64,000 nt of DNA, from sequence record OR142618.1; one strand, given 5' to 3'. Positions 27,934 to 56,343 of this stretch are shown here, piece by piece. The notes under the pieces were generated by a model, which did no database searches, was not told the DNA's origin, and saw only the letters and a program-made list of their open reading frames with translations. Both the position numbers and the translations under genes were made by a program. The stretch's first letter is position 1. Every line of letters starts with the position of its first letter.

Positions 27934-28680
27934 TTACTTACCTTTTCTTACTAAAATTGACATACAATGTGCTAGTTCGTCATAGTAATTTGGAAATAAT
28001 TGCTTTACTTTTTTATGAAAACTCATAGGCATTGTTTTATTTTTATCTGCTATATGGTAATATTCGGGATCAACTTTCATTAATCTAATAGCATCAGTGC
28101 CAGTTAATTGTATTTTATTCAATAATGTTTCAGTTTCCCTAGATTTAGGCAATTTATTATTACATATTTCAGAAATTACAAGGCAAGGTTTAATGTTATC
28201 TATATTGTTATTTGCTACAAATTCGATAAATTTTGTTCTAAACGAAATTTTAAATAATTGTTCAGGAATAGGTGTATTATATACTATTGAGTTTAAATCT
28301 AAATCTGTTAATATTTTTGCCATACGTTTTATACAGTCTTTAGAATTATAATAAATTACACGATAGTATGGAGTATTATGCCATACTTGTATATACTTCA
28401 TTAACACTTTGGGGTGAATACTAACAATAGTTTTTAACCGCTCGGTTGGAATAACATCACCGAATGTGTGTATATGTCTAGCAACAAACTTGTCTGACAT
28501 TTTAGAAACTAATCTAGTTTTTGCTGCTGTAGATGCATCTACAGCAGCATGATACAGTAGTTCGTCGTCATTAGAATAATTATTCTCTATTAGTTTTACG
28601 ATGTTATGTTTTTTGCAATTATACGTATTTAATAAGATTTCTTTCAAATCTTCTTTTTCTATATAAATTTTATTATTCAT
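27934..28680 (-). CDS. hypothetical alpha-helical protein
   Basis: Third gene of the coupled trio. Confidence 0.7.
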   Translation of the reverse strand: MNNKIYIEKEDLKEILLNTYNCKKHNIVKLIENNYSNDDELLYHAAVDASTAAKTRLVSKMSDKFVARHIHTFGDVIPTERLKTIVSIHPKVLMKYIQVWHNTPYYRVIYYNSKDCIKRMAKILTDLDLNSIVYNTPIPEQLFKISFRTKFIEFVANNNIDNIKPCLVISEICNNKLPKSRETETLLNKIQLTGTDAIRLMKVDPEYYHIADKNKTMPMSFHKKVKQLFPNYYDELAHCMSILVRKGK

Positions 28681-29632
28681 TTGTTTTTCTTTTTCCTTTG
28701 CCTGTAGATAAAATATACATAAAATATTCTTCGTTATTTTTTAATTCGGGATACATCTTAAACATTTCTGACCAACTAGTTTTTGTTAATTTTTCGAGAT
28801 GCTTAGGTACTATAGGCTTAAAGGTTGTCGTATATTTCTTAGCAAATGCTACTAGGTTAGCACCTGTAAACGGAGTGCCGTGTACAAATTCTTTAGAAGA
28901 AAGTTCATCCGATATATCGTTTTCGTTAATTTCAAAAAAGTTAACAATATTGTATACATCAGATTTAGAAATGTACCTATTTTTTATTATATCGTTTTTT
29001 ATTGTATCTAAAGTAAATATTTGCTTAAGATCGTTTACTGTATCTAAAGCATATTTAGGACACAATTTATTAGACTTATTAAAGTCAGATACTGTATGTT
29101 TAATTGCTGGCGGCAAATGGTAATAATACGAAAATGAATTATAAGTAAATACGAGATTTGCCATACTACACAGACGTTTAATATGTTTATCTATTACATT
29201 GGCATATAATTTATCATAATTTTTATATGTTTTTAAATTATGTAAATCAGACACATCTATTTTATTTAAACACAGCATCAATGGAATACAGTCACTGTAC
29301 CTAGCTGCCACATTATTTACAATAGGTTTACTGTTGAATTTAGATTTAAACTCATTAATTATTTTTTCATTAAACAAAATAGAAATGTCTTTTATAAGAA
29401 ATTCATGCAATGCTCTGCATAACCCATCAAACTGTGTACTATTCTTAAATGCATAAAGACTAGTAGATAAACTATCATTGTTAAAAAACGATGATAATGC
29501 ACGGTGTGCATCTGATGAATGCGCTAGCGGTATGTCATATCTAATAGAACTTTCTAATATATATTCTATATCATTTCGTTCTACTGAATTCCAGTCAATT
29601 TGTGATAACATTTGTGATACTGATTTTTTCAT
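28673..29632 (-). CDS. hypothetical alpha-helical protein
   Basis: Overlaps its neighbours by 1-8 nt. Confidence 0.7.
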   Translation of the reverse strand: MKKSVSQMLSQIDWNSVERNDIEYILESSIRYDIPLAHSSDAHRALSSFFNNDSLSTSLYAFKNSTQFDGLCRALHEFLIKDISILFNEKIINEFKSKFNSKPIVNNVAARYSDCIPLMLCLNKIDVSDLHNLKTYKNYDKLYANVIDKHIKRLCSMANLVFTYNSFSYYYHLPPAIKHTVSDFNKSNKLCPKYALDTVNDLKQIFTLDTIKNDIIKNRYISKSDVYNIVNFFEINENDISDELSSKEFVHGTPFTGANLVAFAKKYTTTFKPIVPKHLEKLTKTSWSEMFKMYPELKNNEEYFMYILSTGKGKRKTNE

Positions 29633-30525
29633 TAGTTTCGGGGACCTTTAAGTTTTGCTAGTACATGTTGTTCTGACCCAGACAAATGAGGGAAGATCTT
29701 TATAAGTTTGTTCCAGTACGAATACGGCAAAAAATCGAGATTTATATGATCTAAATATTTTATATAATTACTATGCAACCTATTCCTCGAAAATATAGTC
29801 AATATATGTCGTCCTGCTATATAAGACCAATCTATATTTTTAAGAAATTTAATACAACTGTCAGTAGACATTGTCTGACCATTTGCTTTATGCATATAGA
29901 ATAGCGAAGACATCCTTTCAAAAAGAAACCAGTGATATTGTTTATTTTTAGAAATAGTATCAAACCCTACAAATTTTACATATTCTTCAAAAACAGAATA
30001 TCTTTTACTACAAAAAAAATTAAATACTCTTTTATCTAACAAAACGTTATGTCGTTTTAATTCTTTTAAAATAAGTCTTACTATGTTTAAATCAGGTAAA
30101 GATTGTATGGTACACAATTGCGTTATTATATCTTTAGATAATGCTTTTCTCGGTTTTAAATTCTTTAAAACAACATAAAATAATTTATGACATGTTATAG
30201 GAACTTTCATAGGAAACATTGAATTTGAAAATTTTCCAATACATTGCCTGACAAGATATAAATCTTCTTTACTTATAGATCTGTTATATTCACTAATAGA
30301 AGATGAATAATTACTTGATATAAAGTTTACTAATTTGGGACTTTTAATTTCCATAAGAACATTCAATACAGTAGCATTGAACGGTATATATTCAACATCA
30401 ATAGAATTACAGACTGCAATTAGTGCATCTTTAGCTGAATTATTAGCAATTGTTATTTCTTTATTTTTTCTAAATTTAATGAAATATTCTAATTCACTTA
30501 AAGCTTTAATGTAACTAATATCCAT
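29632..30525 (-). CDS. hypothetical alpha-helical protein
   Basis: First gene after the minus-strand promoter. Confidence 0.7.
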   Translation of the reverse strand: MDISYIKALSELEYFIKFRKNKEITIANNSAKDALIAVCNSIDVEYIPFNATVLNVLMEIKSPKLVNFISSNYSSSISEYNRSISKEDLYLVRQCIGKFSNSMFPMKVPITCHKLFYVVLKNLKPRKALSKDIITQLCTIQSLPDLNIVRLILKELKRHNVLLDKRVFNFFCSKRYSVFEEYVKFVGFDTISKNKQYHWFLFERMSSLFYMHKANGQTMSTDSCIKFLKNIDWSYIAGRHILTIFSRNRLHSNYIKYLDHINLDFLPYSYWNKLIKIFPHLSGSEQHVLAKLKGPRN

Positions 30526-30551
30526 ACATATACCGTAAAAATTTTTACCAT

Positions 30552-30580
30552 ACTATAAAATATGTATATTCAATAGTCAA
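30552..30580 (-). promoter_or_regulatory. sigma70-like promoter (leftward)
   Basis: TTGACT-N17-TATAGT on the minus strand. Confidence 0.7.
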
Positions 30581-30614
30581 CTGTGTTTGGTAACAAAATG
30601 TGGTAATTAGGCAC

Positions 30615-30643
30615 TTGACATTGGTATTGTCTTTTAGTAAACT
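30615..30643 (+). promoter_or_regulatory. sigma70-like promoter (rightward, no ORF downstream)
   Basis: TTGACA-N17-TAAACT. Confidence 0.75.
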
Positions 30644-30649
30644 GTGCGC

Positions 30650-31280
30650 TTGCGTAAGAAATGTATATACGATAGTGCTATATGTATATACAGACAAGTG
30701 GCTCTGTTCCATTATTGGATATTGGTAGTAGAAACTATCCCCATCGTGCTGTTATTGTAGTTCCGATAGTGTCGGGTTAACGTTTTAACAGTTATTTAAA
30801 TTATGATTTTGGGTGCCACAGAGATTGTACTTACTAAAAGGACTTAGTAAGAACCGCATATAATCTCGAAACTTGGGTAGGATGTTGGTCTAACCACGGC
30901 ATAGAATATATGCCTCAACTACTACACGGAAAGGATGATGCTCTGGTTGAAACAGAGTTTCTATAAATCTTTCAGTATAGATTCCGTATGGCTGAAAGTT
31001 GAAACACCAACATCAATAGACTATAGTTTTTGTTAGTGTGGCTATAGTTTATTCCGGCATTGAAAGTATATACAGTGATGCGAGACAGTAAGCATTAGTA
31101 GCAACTGTATATATGAGTAAGAGGATGCGTTTACAATGAGGAATTACCTATCGGTGCCCGCCTCGGGGATTGCACTTCCCAACGTACACTAAACTTCGTA
31201 CCATACCGAAACATACGTTTCTGTTATTACGATTTCCTTCCCAAACGGGGAGGAAATCTTCTCCGCCCGAATATCATAAG
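30650..31280 (+). ncRNA. large structured non-coding RNA candidate (~630 nt)
   Basis: No ORF, GC above the flanks, promoter at the 5' end, more than 10 complementary helices including long-range pairs 30801-30815/31264-31279 and 30881-30889/31006-31014. Confidence 0.75.
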
Positions 31281-31320
31281 ATCAAAAGCATTAATAATTA
31301 ATACATAAAATTCATTTAAT

Positions 31321-32330
31321 TAGTTATTAAGTATATGAGTTGTAGTTTACGAAAACGAATATACTTAATAACTACCAGTGAAGCTTGCTTCGCTGTTTAA
31401 AATTGCAATTTGTATTTTCAATTTTATATTTCGAAATGTGTTTTTGAAAATCAATCTATAAAATATAATTTTAAATATTATTTTTAAATGTCATTTTGTG
31501 ATTTTAATTTAAAATACTATTTCATAATTTAAAATGGAAATATATTAAACAATATCATTTTGTGATTTTAATTTAAACAATTCCATATAAAACTATTTTG
31601 TCTATTTCTTTTATAATCTTAAAGTCATTAAAAACCCTACAAACGTAGGGTTTTTATTTGATTATATTGTATTCGGTTCAAGACATTTAGATTATTATAA
31701 TTAATAATATCTGCATGATAATTTTATTTTATAGAAATACATTTACTAATTACATTTATCAATGAATGGTTATTTTCTTTATATTTAATGCGTCTCAGGG
31801 TATATAGCAAATATGATAAATCAAGACACATAATATTTGTGTCTATATTTTTAGTTTCATTACTCTACATAATCTATTATTGATGTATACAGTTATATAC
31901 GCTATGATGTAATAACAAACCAAATTATATAGAGAATATACATTAAACTCTGTTTTGTGTTAAATCGACACTACATATATTATTATATATTGATACCTGC
32001 TGTATATAAAACTAATTAGTTATTATGTGCTTTAGAAGAATTCCATTATAATTAGTTTTCTGTGTCATACTCAAATGATGAAAGAATATAATTCTTTCAT
32101 CTTTTTTATTATATGTTATTCAAGATTTATAATATAATTTTATAATGTTTGCAATTTATGACACAAGCTATTTTAATAGAATTATACTATTCAAAGTTTT
32201 GACTTATTTTGTGTGTAAAACGACAAAAATAGGCATATATAAAAAGCACACCTGTTTCCTGTATGAAACAAAATAGTATTTTATTAAAAATAGTGTATAG
32301 TAGTAAAAAACATCATTAATCATGCACGCA
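31321..32330. other. AT-rich non-coding region with inverted and direct repeats (origin-like)
   Basis: 16-bp perfect inverted repeat 31321-31336/31359-31374; direct repeat tcattttgtgattttaatttaaa at ~31491 and ~31555; hairpin terminator 31630-31655; lies at the gene-strand switch. Confidence 0.5.
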
Positions 32331-32334
32331 ATTT

Positions 32335-32771
32335 ATGGCAAACGTAATTAAAGAACTTCATCCCATTAAAGGATATTGCATAGTTGTGCGTCATCCGGGC
32401 GATACTAGATTTAGCTGGGTATCGCTAGACAATCAATATATTTTGGTAGACAATCCAGTACTTTTAAATGATGAATTTGATAATTGTAAAAACGAATGGC
32501 CAGATGCTGAAATAAAAATAGTAGAAGTGTATGTTGTCCCGGAGAAGGTGTTATGAATGCTATATCCAAAATATCTCCGTCTAAATGTTACACTGTCGTA
32601 GTTACAGATAATAATTGGAAATCATGCACGTGGATAAATTATAATGATTCTCCGGTTGTAGAATATGATATTTCTAAAATATCATCTATATTGGAATCTT
32701 GTAAGAAAAAGTTTGGCGATAGTAATGTAAAAGTAATGGAAATATATTTAGTACCGGAAAACTTTTTATGA
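32335..32771 (+). CDS. two paralogous small proteins (32335..32556, 32553..32771)
   Basis: Shared pattern Y..VV.......W.......V......C...KI.E.Y.VPE..L; ATGA overlap. Confidence 0.65.
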
Positions 32772-33281: not shown

Positions 33282-34436
33282 ATGAGTCAGATGTACGTAA
33301 CTATCACTAACGGAATGTACCGTAACCAGCAAGTAAACGGCACATTCCTTTTACTTGAAGATGTGAAAGTTACTGGGTCGGGAAAACGAGTTATTAACGT
33401 ATTAGGTGCATTGCCGGAATGGTCTCAACATAAATGTAGAGTTACACTCGGTAATGACGCAACAGTACAATATTCGAACGAACAAGGAGAGGTTTTAGAT
33501 TTGCCTAATGTTATACGTCCGTTTGTGGGCGAAAATAATAATAATGTTCCTGCATCTAGTCGCGGTACAGTGTATGAAGGCACCGCAGTAGAAATTGACT
33601 ACGAAAAGCAATACCAACAACTAGAATCCGAAAACGATGCAATGAATCGTATCAAACGGACCTTTGAGATTGTAAATGAACTAACAGAAGCTGCCGCAGC
33701 AGGCGAAATCCGTTCTATGATCATCTCCGGTCCTCCCGGAATCGGAAAAAGTTTCGGTGTAGAAGAAACACTAAACAGGTGTTTCTTGTTGGATAAAATT
33801 AAAGATAATAAAGAACCGTTTGAGATCGTAAAGGGCGCGGCAAGTGCAATTGGTGTTTACCAAAAGCTTTACGAATTTAAAGATAAAGGTAAAATCCTTA
33901 TTTTCGATGATTGCGACCGCGTACTATTTGACGAAGATAGTCTAAATCTCCTTAAAGGTGCATTAGATACTACTAAGCGTAGAACTATTTACTGGCTTAG
34001 TGAGTCCCGTGTTTTAAAAGAAAATGATATTCCACCTAAATTCGATTTCGAAGGTAGTGTAATTTTCCTTACTAACCTTAACTTCGAGGATACAAAGTCC
34101 CGAATCGGAAGGCACCTAGAAGCAATTATGTCCCGGTGTCATTATTTAGACATGGAAATTAGTAGTACGAGAGACCAGATCCTTCGTATTAAACAAGTTG
34201 TGCGCGACGGGATGCTTAGTAAATATGAATTTAATAACGGAGAAGATGAAGAAATCCTAGAATATATTATTGATAATCAGAATGATCTGCGAGAACTTAG
34301 CTTGCGTATGGTAATTAAAATTGCCGATCTGATTAAATTCAAAAAAGATGGTTGGCGAGAATATGCAGAGACAACTGTACTGAAACGGAATGCAAAATTC
34401 CGGCGGCTGTATAACGAAAAGTACAGTGATATTTAA
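33282..34436 (+). CDS. AAA+ ATPase
   Basis: Walker A ISGPPGIGKS, Walker B LIFDDCD, IFLTN, AIMSR. Confidence 0.85.
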   Translation: MSQMYVTITNGMYRNQQVNGTFLLLEDVKVTGSGKRVINVLGALPEWSQHKCRVTLGNDATVQYSNEQGEVLDLPNVIRPFVGENNNNVPASSRGTVYEGTAVEIDYEKQYQQLESENDAMNRIKRTFEIVNELTEAAAAGEIRSMIISGPPGIGKSFGVEETLNRCFLLDKIKDNKEPFEIVKGAASAIGVYQKLYEFKDKGKILIFDDCDRVLFDEDSLNLLKGALDTTKRRTIYWLSESRVLKENDIPPKFDFEGSVIFLTNLNFEDTKSRIGRHLEAIMSRCHYLDMEISSTRDQILRIKQVVRDGMLSKYEFNNGEDEEILEYIIDNQNDLRELSLRMVIKIADLIKFKKDGWREYAETTVLKRNAKFRRLYNEKYSDI

Positions 34437-52103: not shown

Positions 52104-52180
52104 CCCTCGGTAGCTCAGTTGGTTAGAGCGCGCGACTCATAATCGCTAGGTCACTGGTTCGAATCCAGTTCGAGGGACCA
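52104..52180 (+). tRNA. tRNA-Ile2(CAU)
   Basis: Cloverleaf with CCA; anticodon arm GCGA-CUCAUAA-UCGC like E. coli ileX. Confidence 0.85.
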
Positions 52181-52202
52181 ATTTTAAGATGTTGTGCTTT
52201 TA

Positions 52203-52287
52203 GCCCGAGTGGTGAAATTGGTAGACACAGGAGACTTAAAATCTCCCGCTTCGCAGCGTACCGGTTCGAGTCCGGTCTCGGGTACCA
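52203..52287 (+). tRNA. tRNA-Leu(UAA)
   Basis: ggaga-cttaaaa-tctcc, long variable arm, CCA. Confidence 0.95.
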
Positions 52288-52337
52288 AACAAAAGATATA
52301 AATACTTAACAAGATAGGAAACTATTCTAAAATTAAA

Positions 52338-52413
52338 TGGCTAGTAGCTCAGTTGGTAGAGCAAATGACTGTTAATCATTGGGTCGTAGGTTCGAGTCCT
52401 ACCTAGCCAGCCA
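52338..52413 (+). tRNA. tRNA-Asn(GUU)
   Basis: aatga-ctgttaa-tcatt, CCA. Confidence 0.95.
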
Positions 52414-52439
52414 ATTACACTTTGTTGTATATTCAATAT

Positions 52440-52515
<76 letters not shown>

Positions 52516-52584
52516 ATTTTAAATAACAGTTGTATCTAAAGAGATACAATAGTCTAAATAAAATATTCATATAATGTTTCAAAC

Positions 52585-52661
52585 GGGACTTTAGCTCAGT
52601 TGGTTAGAGCGCGCGACTCATAATCGCTAGGTCACTGGTTCGAATCCAGTAAGTCCCACCA
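52585..52661 (+). tRNA. tRNA-Ile2(CAU), second copy
   Basis: Body identical to 52104 copy, different acceptor stem gggactt/aagtccc. Confidence 0.85.
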
Positions 52662-52711
52662 ATTTTTATATACAAATCAAACTATACTTAAACTATATAA
52701 TGAATGAATAT

Positions 52712-52796
52712 GCCCGGTTGGTGAAATCGGTAGACACAGGAGACTTAAAATCTCCCGACGAAAGTCGTGCCAGTTCGAGTCTGGCACCGGGCACCA
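52712..52796 (+). tRNA. tRNA-Leu(UAA), second copy
   Basis: ggaga-cttaaaa-tctcc, CCA. Confidence 0.95.
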
Positions 52797-52824
52797 AACT
52801 CCTACAAAAGGAACATATTATAGT

Positions 52825-53649
52825 ATGTTCCTTTTTTATTATGATATTTTTATTATGAATGAAATAATGCATATATCTGCCAACACATACGTAATAGAAT
52901 ATCGCGTATTAAACAAGTTAGTAGTCACTATAAAAAATAATAGATCTTTTACATTATGGGTACATTTTGATATCGGTACATTTTCTATGGCATGGAAATA
53001 CAATGCAATATAGAATTAAAAAATGAAATACATTATTAATTTACAATACTCAACAGAAGTAATATATATGCCGTGTTTCAACATAATATCGTTATGCGAT
53101 AATAGATATGTTACTATCCTTTCTATTACTATGATATTTAAGATAAGATACTATTTGCATCCGATGTTCCGTTATATTCTATAATACATAATATTTTTAT
53201 TGTAACATATACCAGAAGTGCTTAGATAATATATAGCAATTCTGTTTATTATCGATATTGCGGTATACTTAGCAAAAAATATTTATTTCTTATTAATTGT
53301 ATTACATAGAATAAAGAATGGAAAGAATTTTAACTATTTCACATAAAACATTAATATGTGAACTGTCGTTATTAAAATGGTCGGAATCCATAGTTTGTGC
53401 ATATTCTGGCGAAATAATATGGTATGTTCGGCTGCATAAGAATTGTTATGTAGTACAGCTAAGATGATAATGAACTGTATTTTTTCCTATTCGTACTATT
53501 TAGAACGCATCGTATGTCATGCAAAAATCTACAAAGGGTTTGTAGTCAGTAAAAATACTTTTTGTGAGAAATCCGTAATAGCTTTATACTTAATAAATAG
53601 TGGTAGTTATTTTCATAAATGTTACGTCGATCATTACTTAATTGTATAG
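52825..53649 (+). CDS. small orphan ORFs between tRNAs (52825..53013, 53023..53184, 53443..53649)
   Basis: Short Ile/Tyr-rich ORFs. Confidence 0.35.
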
Positions 53650-53671
53650 ATATATATTTTAATAAAAATAG

Positions 53672-53700
53672 TTGACCAAACGCACAAAACAGTATATAAT
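53672..53700 (+). promoter_or_regulatory. sigma70-like promoter
   Basis: TTGACC-N17-TATAAT. Confidence 0.75.
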
Positions 53701-53751
53701 GTTACGCATACAAAGCATTATTACAAAGCTATCATTAGTTGCACAAGATAT

Positions 53752-53828
53752 GCGCTCGTAGCTCAGCTGGATAGAGCATCCGCCTTCTAAGCGGATGGTC
53801 GGGGGTTCGAATCCCTCCGGGCGCGCCA
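53752..53828 (+). tRNA. tRNA-Arg(UCU)
   Basis: tccgc-cttctaa-gcgga, CCA. Confidence 0.95.
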
Positions 53829-53849
53829 ATTTTTAAAGAGTGTTGTGTT

Positions 53850-54699
53850 ATGCAAACAATAAGATTTGACATAAGACTTCTTCGTTATAGTATGAAACAA
53901 GGTTTCTGCTGTATAGGTAAAGATATATTTGAAGTGTGCAGAAAAACTCAGATCAGTCCAGGTCAGCTAAACTTACGAAAAAATTATATAGGACGAGTAT
54001 TAATCGGAATTGATTCAAACTACAATCTGCACAATACCTGTTTAGTAGGATGGACTCGCTATAAAAATATTATAGTATAAAAATTTATATTAATAATATG
54101 AATAGATGCAAAGAACATCTACAATACAGAACAATCAAAAAGCATACATTAACTTGTAGGAAATGCAAAGAGTTATCGTTACAAATAAAATTATTTTGGC
54201 TTCAACAACAAGCATTCAGTATTAGAACCGATACTAGCGGAATATACATATTCGATATTAAATATAATTCTATTTACGTATACTCTGTAGCTTGGTATAA
54301 TACAGAATTATACGGTAAAGGGAAAATAATTTTAGAATAAACATGTATATAAGAGTACCTCAATTAATGAATAATTATTCTAATGATACAGATATTCTAA
54401 AATGGATAAAGCGTAACAATAGAAAAAATGCACGTCTAATTTCATATATAGACGGAATATATAATATTGTTTATTTCGATGGCGGAAAAGCAAGAGTTGG
54501 CATAGTAAAAGACAATATGCACTGCAGATACGGAATACATAGTCGTGGATCTATGTATTCGAAAGATATAATGAGCCTGTGGCAATCTAGTACAGGTTCG
54601 TGTTCGCCTGATGATGTAAAGATTATGCAAGATTATCTAGACGATAAATGTGTGCTTCCGGAATTTGATTTTTCTCAGATTAAAAATTTAAAATGGTAA
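53850..54699 (+). CDS. three hypothetical proteins (53850..54080, 54098..54340, 54343..54699)
   Basis: Tandem ORFs. Confidence 0.5.
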
Positions 54700-54722
54700 A
54701 TAATATAACAATATAGTTTTAT

Positions 54723-54799
54723 CGCAGGGTATGCAAGAGGTCTAAGCAGAAAGGCTCATAACCTTTTTATCGTGGGTTCGAATCCCACCCCTGCAACCA
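54723..54799 (+). tRNA. tRNA-fMet(CAU), atypical
   Basis: C1:A72 mismatch (initiator determinant); anticodon stem aaagg/ccttt. Confidence 0.8.
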
Positions 54800-54808
54800 G
54801 TTTTATAT

Positions 54809-54885
54809 CTAGGCATAGCTCAAGTAGGTAGAGCACTTGCTTTGGGAGCAAGAGGTTGGGGATTCGAGGTCTCCTGCCTAGACCA
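54809..54885 (+). tRNA. tRNA-Pro(UGG)
   Basis: cttgc-tttggga-gcaag, CCA. Confidence 0.92.
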
Positions 54886-54894
54886 ATTTACTAT

Positions 54895-54967
54895 GCAGTC
54901 CTAGCTCAATTGGTAGAGCACTGTCCTTCCAAGTCAGATGTTACGGGTTCGAGTCCCGTGGGCTGCT
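54895..54967 (+). tRNA. tRNA-Gly(UCC)
   Basis: ctgtc-cttccaa-gtcag; followed by CAA rather than CCA. Confidence 0.85.
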
Positions 54968-55784
54968 CAATATTCTAATATAATTTATTAGTATATCTAA
55001 TCGATGGTTAGTGTAGTGGATGCATATGGAAATATAGAAGTATTAGTTATGCCATCTAACATAACGGTACTAGAATTACAGGCATATACAACAGAGCTAT
55101 TGTATGTAAGAAAATCTCATTGTTTATGTTTATACCTTCCTGATATAGGAAATTATGCTTTATGGTTTTTTTAGACAGATAGGATAAAAATATAAATTGA
55201 TATTATTCTGTTTAAGGAACTAGCATTAAATGGCAGGTTGCATATTTAGACTCGATTTGTCTATTTTTCGTGAAAATGTATATAGTATTTCTAGGTTGTC
55301 TTATACAAAATCTATATGTGTTTCAATAAAAACTAAACCGACAAGCAATAGAAAACAATTAGAAATATATGTTGTAGATAAAACAACTGATTTTTTAGTT
55401 GCATGCAAGTATTTTTAGCTTATCTATTTTGACTTGCCTTTAAAATAAATAACCATTATATATTTGATATAACAACCATTCTAAATAGAAATAAAACCAT
55501 AAATACACATAATAACGGTGTGGATTTATGGAAAACATATTTAGGATATCTATTAATGCTAACGAAGGTATTATACGAATATCCCCTACTTACTTTTTTA
55601 ATGGTGTTTTTTATTCAAAGCATTTGAATATTTTTATAATAGATCCCGACGGATATCTAATAAGAAAAATATATACTTGTAGTACATTCTTATGATGATT
55701 TCTTTTAAATATACAAAATAGCATTTGACACAAGTATAATTATTTCGTATAATAAGCGTATAAAACAACAAAAGAGAATTTTAA

Positions 55785-56144
55785 ATGATTTCCAAAATTC
55801 AAATTGTATACGGAATATATCTTCCTACTGCCGATGCAAAAATTATATACGAAGACTCGGAATACGAATCTAATAAAATAAATAAAAATATTAGATTATT
55901 TGCAAATGATGCATATTTAGAAGATAAGATTTTAGAAAATAAGGAATTTGAAGATAATCCCTATGTTCCGCACTTTTATGGTATCTTTTGTAAAGAATTC
56001 GATAATGACCAAAGTGCATACTTATATAATGTTCCTAAATCTTTTATAGATGAATATAATAATGTAGCTCCAGCTATTTTAGCTAGACTCGGTTATTTAG
56101 ATAGAGTTGCAGGAAAACAACATTGTAGAATAATTTACGAATAG
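55785..56144 (+). CDS. hypothetical protein
   Basis: 119 aa ORF. Confidence 0.6.
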   Translation: MISKIQIVYGIYLPTADAKIIYEDSEYESNKINKNIRLFANDAYLEDKILENKEFEDNPYVPHFYGIFCKEFDNDQSAYLYNVPKSFIDEYNNVAPAILARLGYLDRVAGKQHCRIIYE

Positions 56145-56158
56145 AATTAACTAGTTTT

Positions 56159-56248
56159 GGAGAGGTGATAGAGTCTGGTTTATTATACTAGTCTTGAAAA
56201 CTAGCGGATCGAAAGGTCCCGTGGGTTCGAATCCCACCCTCTCCGCCA
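56159..56248 (+). tRNA. tRNA-Ser(UGA)
   Basis: ctagt-cttgaaa-actag, long variable arm, CCA. Confidence 0.95.
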
Positions 56249-56253
56249 AATAT

Positions 56254-56343
56254 AGATACTTGACCGAGTGGCTTAAGGTGCTTCCCTGCTAAGGAAGTGA
56301 GTTTGAAAAAGCTCCGTAGGTTCGAATCCTACAGTATCTGCCA
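56254..56343 (+). tRNA. tRNA-Ser(GCU)
   Basis: cttcc-ctgctaa-ggaag, long variable arm, CCA; terminator 56350-56374. Confidence 0.95.

Follow-up and report, generated by a model that had tools for sequence, protein, structure and literature searches.

Positions 30651-31280 of the 64,000-nucleotide (nt) stretch of sequence record OR142618.1 analyzed here (hereafter the window), which belongs to the phage Callisto, carry on their + strand an RNA gene of ~600 bases with a conserved, elaborate fold that is found in PA5oct-type giant Pseudomonas phages. By sequence, the segment is the orthologue of ncRNA004 of phage PA5oct, and the transcript itself was already known; what is new is the assignment of its promoter, the recognition of a second lineage, the conserved multi-domain and possibly pseudoknotted fold, and the lack of a match to any existing family. 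We consider it very probable that the locus is a gene for a non-coding RNA (ncRNA) and neither a coding nor a DNA-level feature. It shows the marks of a structured ncRNA gene, namely no conserved open reading frame (ORF), its own promoter and 3' end together with an observed transcript, and compensatory substitutions.

The transcript, its promoter and its annotation

Positions 30550-31400 are 100% identical to the Callisto record, and their comparison by BLAST with ten further Wroclawvirus records (jumbo phages of the PA5oct group, ~287 kb) gave identities of 98.6-99.8%. PA5oct is 99.3% identical to Callisto over 851 nt at the ncRNA004 locus, and locus, strand and extent all match: the PA5oct feature 246116..246734 (tag EST35_0353; "putative lncRNA; ncRNA004; annotation based on RNA-Seq data") equals 30662..31280 of the window. 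An initial annotation of the window had described the segment as unannotated, which is correct for the Callisto record, where no feature is annotated at 30651-31280, but not for the species, given that the PA5oct record marks ncRNA004 from RNA sequencing (RNA-seq).

Lood et al. (2020, PMC7318152) listed ncRNA004 among four transcribed ORF-free regions "lacking known promoters" in PA5oct, a phage reliant on host RNA polymerase, and found that it made up 0.08% of phage reads at 5 min, 0.03% at 15 min and 0.02% at 25 min. Promoter, fold, homologues beyond the species, family and function are all absent from their paper, and our literature search found no later work mentioning it. It is well supported that the PA5oct product is a discrete RNA of ~620 nt whose abundance peaks early in infection, with ends that come from RNA-seq coverage and fall short of nucleotide resolution. 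The transcribed segment and the calls made across it are as follows.

30615..30643 (+): sigma-70-type promoter TTGACA-17-TAAACT, a 10/12 match, with an expected start at ~30650-30652
30651..31280 (+): transcript, orthologue of PA5oct ncRNA004; the core common to the diverged homologue L014 (described below) is 30694-31262
30545-30697 (-), 30682-30780 (+), 30935-31036 (+), 31170-31301 (+) and 31365-31454 (-): small coding sequence (CDS) calls across the RNA or just past its 3' end

The promoter that had been noted upstream of the segment is indeed present, and it is the best + strand promoter match in the region. The gene upstream of the RNA lies on the opposite strand, and GC content rises to 36-42% in the RNA segment compared to 20-27% in the flanks and 13-20% in the downstream spacer. 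The segment also proved to be free of ORFs, as had been claimed: no ORF overlapping 30545-31301 exceeds 55 amino acids (aa), those on the + strand have at most 43 aa, and no ORF is common to the Callisto RNA and L014. Since a 33-aa ORF that starts in the most conserved, invariant block meets a stop at codon 5 in L014, selection on this block is not on a peptide. Five records (Cassandra, Deifobo, Paride, Ettore and PAC2) carry two to four tiny "hypothetical proteins" within the RNA; these small CDSs have no counterpart in L014. Such calls across the RNA in Wroclawvirus records are probably false, and one ncRNA feature should take their place in genome annotation.

Conservation and architecture of the fold

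In the Logan assemblies, a relative with 65% identity exists for the AAA ATPase encoded 2 kb downstream of the RNA, and a 5.5-kb metagenomic contig bearing a member of that ATPase cluster (L014, from SRR32006999) extends upstream of it. In this contig, a 1.1-kb gene-free gap between a gp351 homologue and an opposite-strand 214-aa ORF aligns collinearly with the Callisto RNA, the matching blocks being 75-91% identical. A perfect sigma-70 promoter (TTGACA-18-TATAAT, 12/12) at L014 positions 1230-1259 stops 22 nt short of the first conserved block; further on, at 1741-1760, a hairpin resembling a terminator is the counterpart of the Callisto hairpin P9 described below.

Over its whole length the RNA shows 59% identity between the two lineages, rising to 91% in some blocks, while four-fold degenerate sites in the flanking genes are at saturation (32-37% identical) and the gp351 protein is 31% identical, far below the adjoining RNA. 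Among genomes of the genus, 3-9 columns per 200 nt vary in the RNA, as in its coding flanks, compared to 29-43 in the downstream spacer (ten genomes). Because its identity lies above that of saturated four-fold sites and few of its columns vary within the genus, we conclude that the RNA is under purifying selection.

The known distribution of the RNA is narrow. Searched by BLAST against 50,697 phage genomes, the Callisto and L014 RNAs matched 11 Wroclawvirus records only, and scans of IMG/VR, by protein or by DNA patterns taken from the RNA, gave nothing or chance matches; L016 is a P-loop gene. Scans of JGI metagenomes and GTDB with the invariant block of hairpin P3a yielded 60 matches, all due to chance, with two 24-nt matches falling inside a capsule tyrosine-kinase-like gene. 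More distant ATPase-bearing contigs (L011-13, L078-81) showed no synteny and no nhmmer match to the RNA, no paralogue of the RNA was found within the 64-kb window, and the PA5oct ncRNAs 001-003 have no similarity to ncRNA004.

The + strand folds clearly better than its dinucleotide shuffles. In Callisto, its minimum free energy (MFE) is -185 kcal/mol compared to -151 +/- 5 for the shuffles (z -6.6), while the - strand reaches z -2.4; the corresponding values for L014 are -3.1 and -0.65. The least biased test of the structure combined the MFE fold of Callisto only with a sequence-only MAFFT alignment: among the pairs changed on both sides in L014, 21 are kept and 11 broken (p=0.006 on permuting the 3' partners). 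Folded as a consensus, the two sequences reached z -7.4 on the + strand and -5.6 on the - strand relative to column shuffles. RNAalifold, applied to five sequences, placed 29 both-side changes in its 175 pairs, a structure that is derived from the same alignment and hence somewhat favored, while its controls gave 5.7 +/- 2.1 (shuffles) or 3-6 (3' partners slid by 1-3 columns). A curated set of helices, which was obtained by folding the inter-anchor segments of each sequence separately and was chosen with both sequences in view, contains 81 pairs; none is broken, 49 are the same in both lineages, 3 differ on one side and 29 on both. Thus, the covariation sought among homologues takes the form of compensatory changes in many helices between Callisto and L014, two lineages in all.

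Variation within the genus follows the model as well. Across ten Wroclawvirus genomes, 18 positions of the RNA vary, 10 of them unpaired and 8 paired. All eight paired-site substitutions exchange A and G across from a U that does not vary; the + strand thereby retains a G-U pair, the other strand would acquire a C-A mismatch, and no pair is broken. Differences in length between the lineages affect whole hairpins: 31066-31114 and 31208-21 are missing in L014, where the 30748-92 arm is shortened and P2 has an extra hairpin. Taken together, it is well supported that a complex fold is under selection, together with specific single-stranded sequences, and equally so that the helices are held by compensatory change while several single strands and loops are invariant.

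These observations bear on the possibility that there is no functional structured RNA here, only a by-product transcript or a DNA-level element such as operator palindromes or mobile hairpins. The low abundance of the transcript would fit this explanation, as would the restriction of some hairpins to one lineage and the clustering in the RNA of a palindrome, GTATATAC (three copies versus 0.0 expected). However, conservation lies far above that of saturated neutral sites, compensatory changes occur in many helices, the + strand has the better z in both lineages, and the paired substitutions within the genus that give G-U on the + strand would leave C-A mismatches in the other strand or in a cruciform. 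We therefore regard the explanation as extremely unlikely, and the claim of a ~600-nt, ORF-free, highly structured and independently transcribed + strand RNA stands.

Almost all of the helices listed in the initial annotation are present in Callisto where it had placed them. From 5' to 3', the elements of the RNA are as follows.

30662..30692 (+): 5' hairpin UGUAUAUAC/GUAUAUACA (30662-70/30684-92), lineage-specific; absent from L014, which has its promoter there instead
30698..30819 (+): 5' domain, closed by P1 (30698-702/30815-19); the two sequences, folded independently, agree
30708-11/30716-19 (+): P1a, with both-side changes
30724-29/30734-39 (+): P1b, with both-side changes
30739-46 (+): invariant strand CCCCAUCG in the 5' domain, partner ambiguous
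30748-54/30786-92 (+): P1d, part of the P1d/e arm, with both-side changes
30762-67/30771-76 (+): apical hairpin of the 5' domain
30801-17 (+): invariant strand UUAUGAUUUUGGGUGCC in the 5' domain, partner ambiguous
30821..30867 (+): P2, a two-tier hairpin (lower stem 30821-29/30859-67, upper stem 30830-37/30844-51) with the conserved hexaloop A(A/U)GGAC
30876..30925 (+): P3c/P3d hairpin domain, with a GUAG/CUAC base and a GGCAUA/UAUGCC tip (30898-903/30909-14), from segment folds
30934..30958 (+): most conserved block (91% identical) with hairpin P3a (30940-45/30953-58), GAUGAUGCUCUG-GUNGAAA-CAGAGU
30959..31005 (+): P3b, a two-tier hairpin with upper stem CUUUCAG/CUGAAAG (30969-75/30992-98) and lower stem UUC/GAA
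31003..31015 (+): invariant strand AC(A/G)CCAACAUCA, with alternative pairings of similar energy
31015..31053 (+): P4, a long hairpin (31015-28/31040-53) of 14 bp; 17 bp of largely different sequence in L014
31056..31186 (+): 3' core, with P5 (31056-61/31153-58), P6 (31126-30/31182-86) and P7 (31137-41/31161-65)
31231..31258 (+): P9, a GC-rich 3' hairpin (31231-42/31247-58), followed by a conserved UUCUCC
31264..31279 (+): 3' strand of a closing helix, with partner 30801-30815; supported in the Wroclawvirus lineage only

P1 has both-side changes relative to L014, and in P2 all eight pairs of the upper stem are kept there, four of them through both-side changes, while GAGAU/AUCUC of the lower stem becomes GAAAU/AUUUC. 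The counterpart of P3c/P3d in L014 is GUAGGG/UCCUAC with a CAGC/GCUG tip; because the base of this helix is invariant, we consider it tentative. The pairs of P3a are likewise invariant and are preceded by GAUGAU, with variation at loop position 30948. P3b is replaced in L014 by AAGGUU/GACCUU over GUAUGCA/UGCAUAC, and its loop contains the sites 30982, 30987 and 30991 that vary within the genus. The helices that ViennaRNA proposed at 30922-31/30982-91 are broken by these within-genus substitutions and were rejected in favor of the CUUUCAG/CUGAAAG hairpin, which fits better. In P4, positions 31018 and 31046 show A/G changes opposite U within the genus.

P5, P6 and P7 all have both-side changes, and a G/A variant at 31165 keeps its P7 pair; P5 crosses P6 and P7 in the model, which makes the 3' core a candidate pseudoknot. 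This core encloses the Callisto-specific hairpin 31066-31114 (31066-76/31104-14); the hairpin 31208-12/31217-21 is likewise an insertion of the Callisto lineage. P9, as modeled, looks like a terminator or a hairpin protecting the 3' end.

The closing helix, described initially as having 15 bp, is present, although it consists of 14 pairs with one mismatch and one bulge. In Callisto, its energy of -17.0 kcal/mol is equalled by 1 of 500 shuffled tails, while in L014 it is not significant, and there the strand 30801-15 could pair with similar energies to the 3' tail, to CCCCAUCG or to CCAACAUCA. An A/G variant at 31273 opposite U30807 keeps its pair, and the PA5oct annotation ends at the 3' edge of this helix.

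Other proposed elements did not carry over to L014. The helix gatgttggt/accaacatc (30881-89/31006-14) retains five of its nine pairs, gtgc/gcac is not conserved, and actatc/gatagt finds no support, with ACUAUC pairing with GGUAGU instead. The 5' hairpin 30662-92 corresponds to promoter DNA in L014, and 31066-31114 and 31208-21, as insertions of the Callisto lineage, are not conserved elements either.

Neighboring DNA and genes

Beyond the RNA lies an ORF-free spacer (31290-32330; 13-24% GC), the most variable DNA nearby, to which the 29-43 variable columns per 200 nt in ten genomes refer. It contains a 52-nt direct repeat (31462-31513 and 31526-31577), a hairpin with 26-nt arms (31321-31374) and a strong terminator (31629-31656), and a 64-nt patch (31442-31505) is 74% identical to L014 2010-2073. 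Possible roles for the spacer include a cluster of promoters, an origin or a hot spot of recombination.

ColE1 RNA II and the T4 origin transcripts are structured or promoter-proximal RNAs that prime replication. The Callisto locus is like them in that a promoter and a structured RNA of ~550-600 nt are followed by AT-rich DNA, and its RNA could by analogy be a replication-origin pre-primer or R-loop RNA that is processed in the AT-rich DNA. The position at a divergent gene junction followed by a region of 13-20% GC with 52-nt direct repeats is consistent with this explanation, as are the conservation of the 64-nt AT-rich patch in L014 and the RNase H-like protein reported for PA5oct (PMC7318152). 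In contrast with ColE1 RNA II and the T4 transcripts, however, the Callisto transcript appears to end before the AT-rich DNA: the annotated RNA stops at 31280 and the terminator-like P9 is conserved. Furthermore, the spacer is the most variable DNA in the neighborhood, and cumulative GC skew has no global minimum here, its one dip being what the gene island on the - strand would produce. A role in priming thus appears very unlikely.

Three kinds of repeated element in and around the RNA are absent from L014: the GTATATAC palindrome; a 10-mer, GTATATACAG, common to the two Callisto-specific hairpins (30662-30692 and 31066-31114); and a 16-22-nt motif, ATGTATATNCNATAGT, that occurs at 30563, 30662 and 30756 (spacing 99 and 94 nt) and straddles the promoter. 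The repeat and palindrome stretches are 30563-30578, 30662-30692, 30756-30771 and 31066-31114, and these elements could be the operator of a lineage-specific regulator or a small inserted palindromic element.

Divergent from the RNA is gp352 (29632-30525, - strand; 297 aa), an ORFan of Wroclawvirus only, for which no relatives beyond this genus were found in the phage collection, IMG/VR or a set of 5.8 billion proteins. The virion protein gp351 (28673-29632, - strand) was found in two lineages only. Downstream, 32335-32556 and 32553-32771 encode adjacent paralogous small proteins ending in ...Y(V/L)VPE(K/N)(V/F)L, a family that is kept in the metagenomic relative (L014 2977-3288; L010 1-219), as are a small membrane protein and a 65-66-aa Cys-rich protein; Pfam has no family for any of these proteins.

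The product of 33282-34436, named "thioredoxin" in PA5oct and PAC2, is a P-loop ATPase without a thioredoxin-family match, so this product name looks wrong. It has a sub-threshold match to AAA_16 (28.8 bits versus a cut-off of 32.6 bits) and a weaker one to nSTAND3, is ~30% identical to T4-type nrdC.10 and has thousands of metagenomic relatives. An island of 12 tRNA genes (52104-56340), as reported for PA5oct, lies ~21 kb downstream and is unlinked to the RNA. Elsewhere in PA5oct (MK797984), ncRNA003 is given as 103065..103668 in GenBank (604 nt; L082 366-969) and as 103065..103368 in Table 1 of PMC7318152; it sits at a - to + gene junction, has a modest fold z of -2.05 and partly overlaps an annotated CDS.

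Relationships and possible function of the RNA

Across the whole window, Rfam 15 at gathering score found only the 12 tRNAs at 52104-56340. At E<=10 on both strands, a scan of 30400-31700 found nothing inside 30650-31280 and weak terminator-like matches outside the RNA, and ARAGORN found no tRNA or tRNA-like element within 30000-32500. The covariance models of ROOL (RF03087), GOLLD (RF01998), OLE (RF01071), HEARO and raiA, families that are included in Rfam 15, gave no match, nor did those of RNase P, tmRNA, 6S, group I/II introns and the known self-cleaving ribozymes. Since there is no Rfam 15 match, the RNA is, to the extent that covariance models can show it, not ROOL, GOLLD, OLE or a member of any other listed family.

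The initial annotation had offered a ROOL/GOLLD-class RNA as one possibility; as a statement of membership this does not hold, with no match at E<=10 and the nearest tRNA gene ~21 kb away. In kind, the RNA nevertheless belongs with the large, ornate ncRNAs of phages. Like ROOL and GOLLD, the Callisto RNA is phage-encoded, ORF-free and multi-domain, falls near their size (~600-800 nt) and has covarying helices, with a candidate pseudoknot where theirs have pseudoknots. Unlike them, it comes from a lytic jumbo phage of a Gram-negative host, and it does not lie beside a tRNA island as they usually do. Levels of GOLLD are reported to go up as infected cells lyse, whereas the Callisto-type RNA is low and early in PA5oct. 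Model match, tRNA neighborhood and, as far as reported, abundance therefore all set the Callisto RNA apart.

ROOL and GOLLD form 8-mer and 14-mer RNA-only cages, and the abundance of ROOL is reported to equal that of 16S rRNA (PMC12286853). A similar RNA-only particle, in which the Callisto RNA would form a homo-oligomer through loop-loop and A-minor contacts without protein, is suggested by its size of ~600 nt, its phage origin, its many hairpins with conserved loops and its possible pseudoknot, all of which resemble these cages (PMC12286853). By inspection of the sequence, the GGAC of the P2 loop could contact GUC(U/C) at 30888-91, where the U/C difference keeps the pair. However, the RNA matches none of the ROOL, GOLLD and OLE models, we found no self-complementary loop that is conserved, its read share is low next to the ~16S rRNA level of ROOL, and the locus is far from the tRNA island. 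On balance, we judge an RNA-only particle rather improbable.

We tentatively favor an RNA that the host polymerase makes early and that binds protein as a scaffold or decoy, a model that we consider possible but short of probable. It is favored because invariant loops and junctions carried on covarying helices are typical of RNAs recognized by proteins, and because no antisense target was seen in the window. Most likely, host sigma-70 RNA polymerase starts at ~30651 from TTGACA-17-TAAACT. It is well supported that the RNA then folds into several domains: a 5' domain closed by P1, P2 with its ANGGAC loop, an invariant P3a, a variable P3b and P4, a possibly pseudoknotted core of P5, P6 and P7, and a terminal, GC-rich P9. 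We infer that the folded RNA acts in trans and that, most likely, it would serve as scaffold or decoy for at least one protein of host or phage while the cell is first being taken over. The RNA is not a leader for downstream genes, because it has a terminator-like end and, in L014, is followed by the convergent 214-aa ORF.

RsmY and RsmZ (which bind RsmA), CrcZ (Hfq) and 6S RNA (RNA polymerase) illustrate decoying as a possible mode of action, and the P2 hexaloop A(A/U)GGAC resembles a single RsmA/CsrA site. Unlike these RNAs, however, the Callisto RNA has no Rfam match and no enrichment of GGA, which occurs 10 times versus 8.5 +/- 2.2 expected; AGGA occurs 6 times versus 2.4 expected, and the AANAANAA motif was not found in the RNA. 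Only the GGA of the P2 loop is both conserved and in a loop. Motif counts, which are not enriched for either protein, do not point to a sponge for RsmA/CsrA or Hfq.

Several points weigh against a scaffold or decoy, or against the fold on which it rests. The curated helices were chosen with both sequences in view, the covariation comes from two lineages only (one deep comparison plus near-identical genomes), and the long-range pairings of the closing helix, P1c and the partner of CCAACAUCA are ambiguous. No protein partner, motif or linked gene points to one function; gp352 is absent from L014, and none of nine neighboring proteins reaches the Pfam cut-off. Lastly, the share of PA5oct reads is at most 0.08%, unlike that of abundant scaffold RNAs, although structured RNAs can be under-sampled in RNA-seq.

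A base-pairing regulator or sponge, whose conserved single strands (e.g. UUAUGAUUUUGGGUGCC and CCAACAUCA) would pair with host or phage RNAs, could explain why long stretches are invariant beyond what covarying helices need, and the early expression would suit it. Nevertheless, the size of the RNA and the number of its covarying helices go far beyond the needs of a base-pairing small RNA, and a search of the remaining 64-kb window, which did not extend to the host genome and the remainder of the phage, found no extended or above-chance complementarity. Such a regulator is quite unlikely in our estimation. Invariant internal strands and a possibly pseudoknotted core amid covarying helices could also point to a catalytic RNA, that is, a new self-cleaving or processing ribozyme, but no Rfam ribozyme, RNase P or group I/II intron matched at E<=10, and the RNA has no flanking exons, no tRNA-like element and nothing that points to a substrate. 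We accordingly give catalysis a very low probability.

Beyond the scaffold or decoy reading, the RNA may found a class of its own, of large, ornate RNAs in jumbo phages of Gram-negative bacteria with an RNA-centered mechanism (self-assembly, catalysis or decoying), which we consider unlikely. If this were true, it would involve the pseudoknotted core and the invariant strands, and the target of a decoy would be host defense or take-over. Large RNAs with complex conserved folds are rare and have repeatedly been found to do unusual things, and the phage-borne ROOL and GOLLD have no known function. The phage considered here is lytic on the laboratory strain PAO1 and is under consideration for therapy, and the phage-host pair (PA5oct or Callisto on PAO1) is both culturable and genetically tractable.

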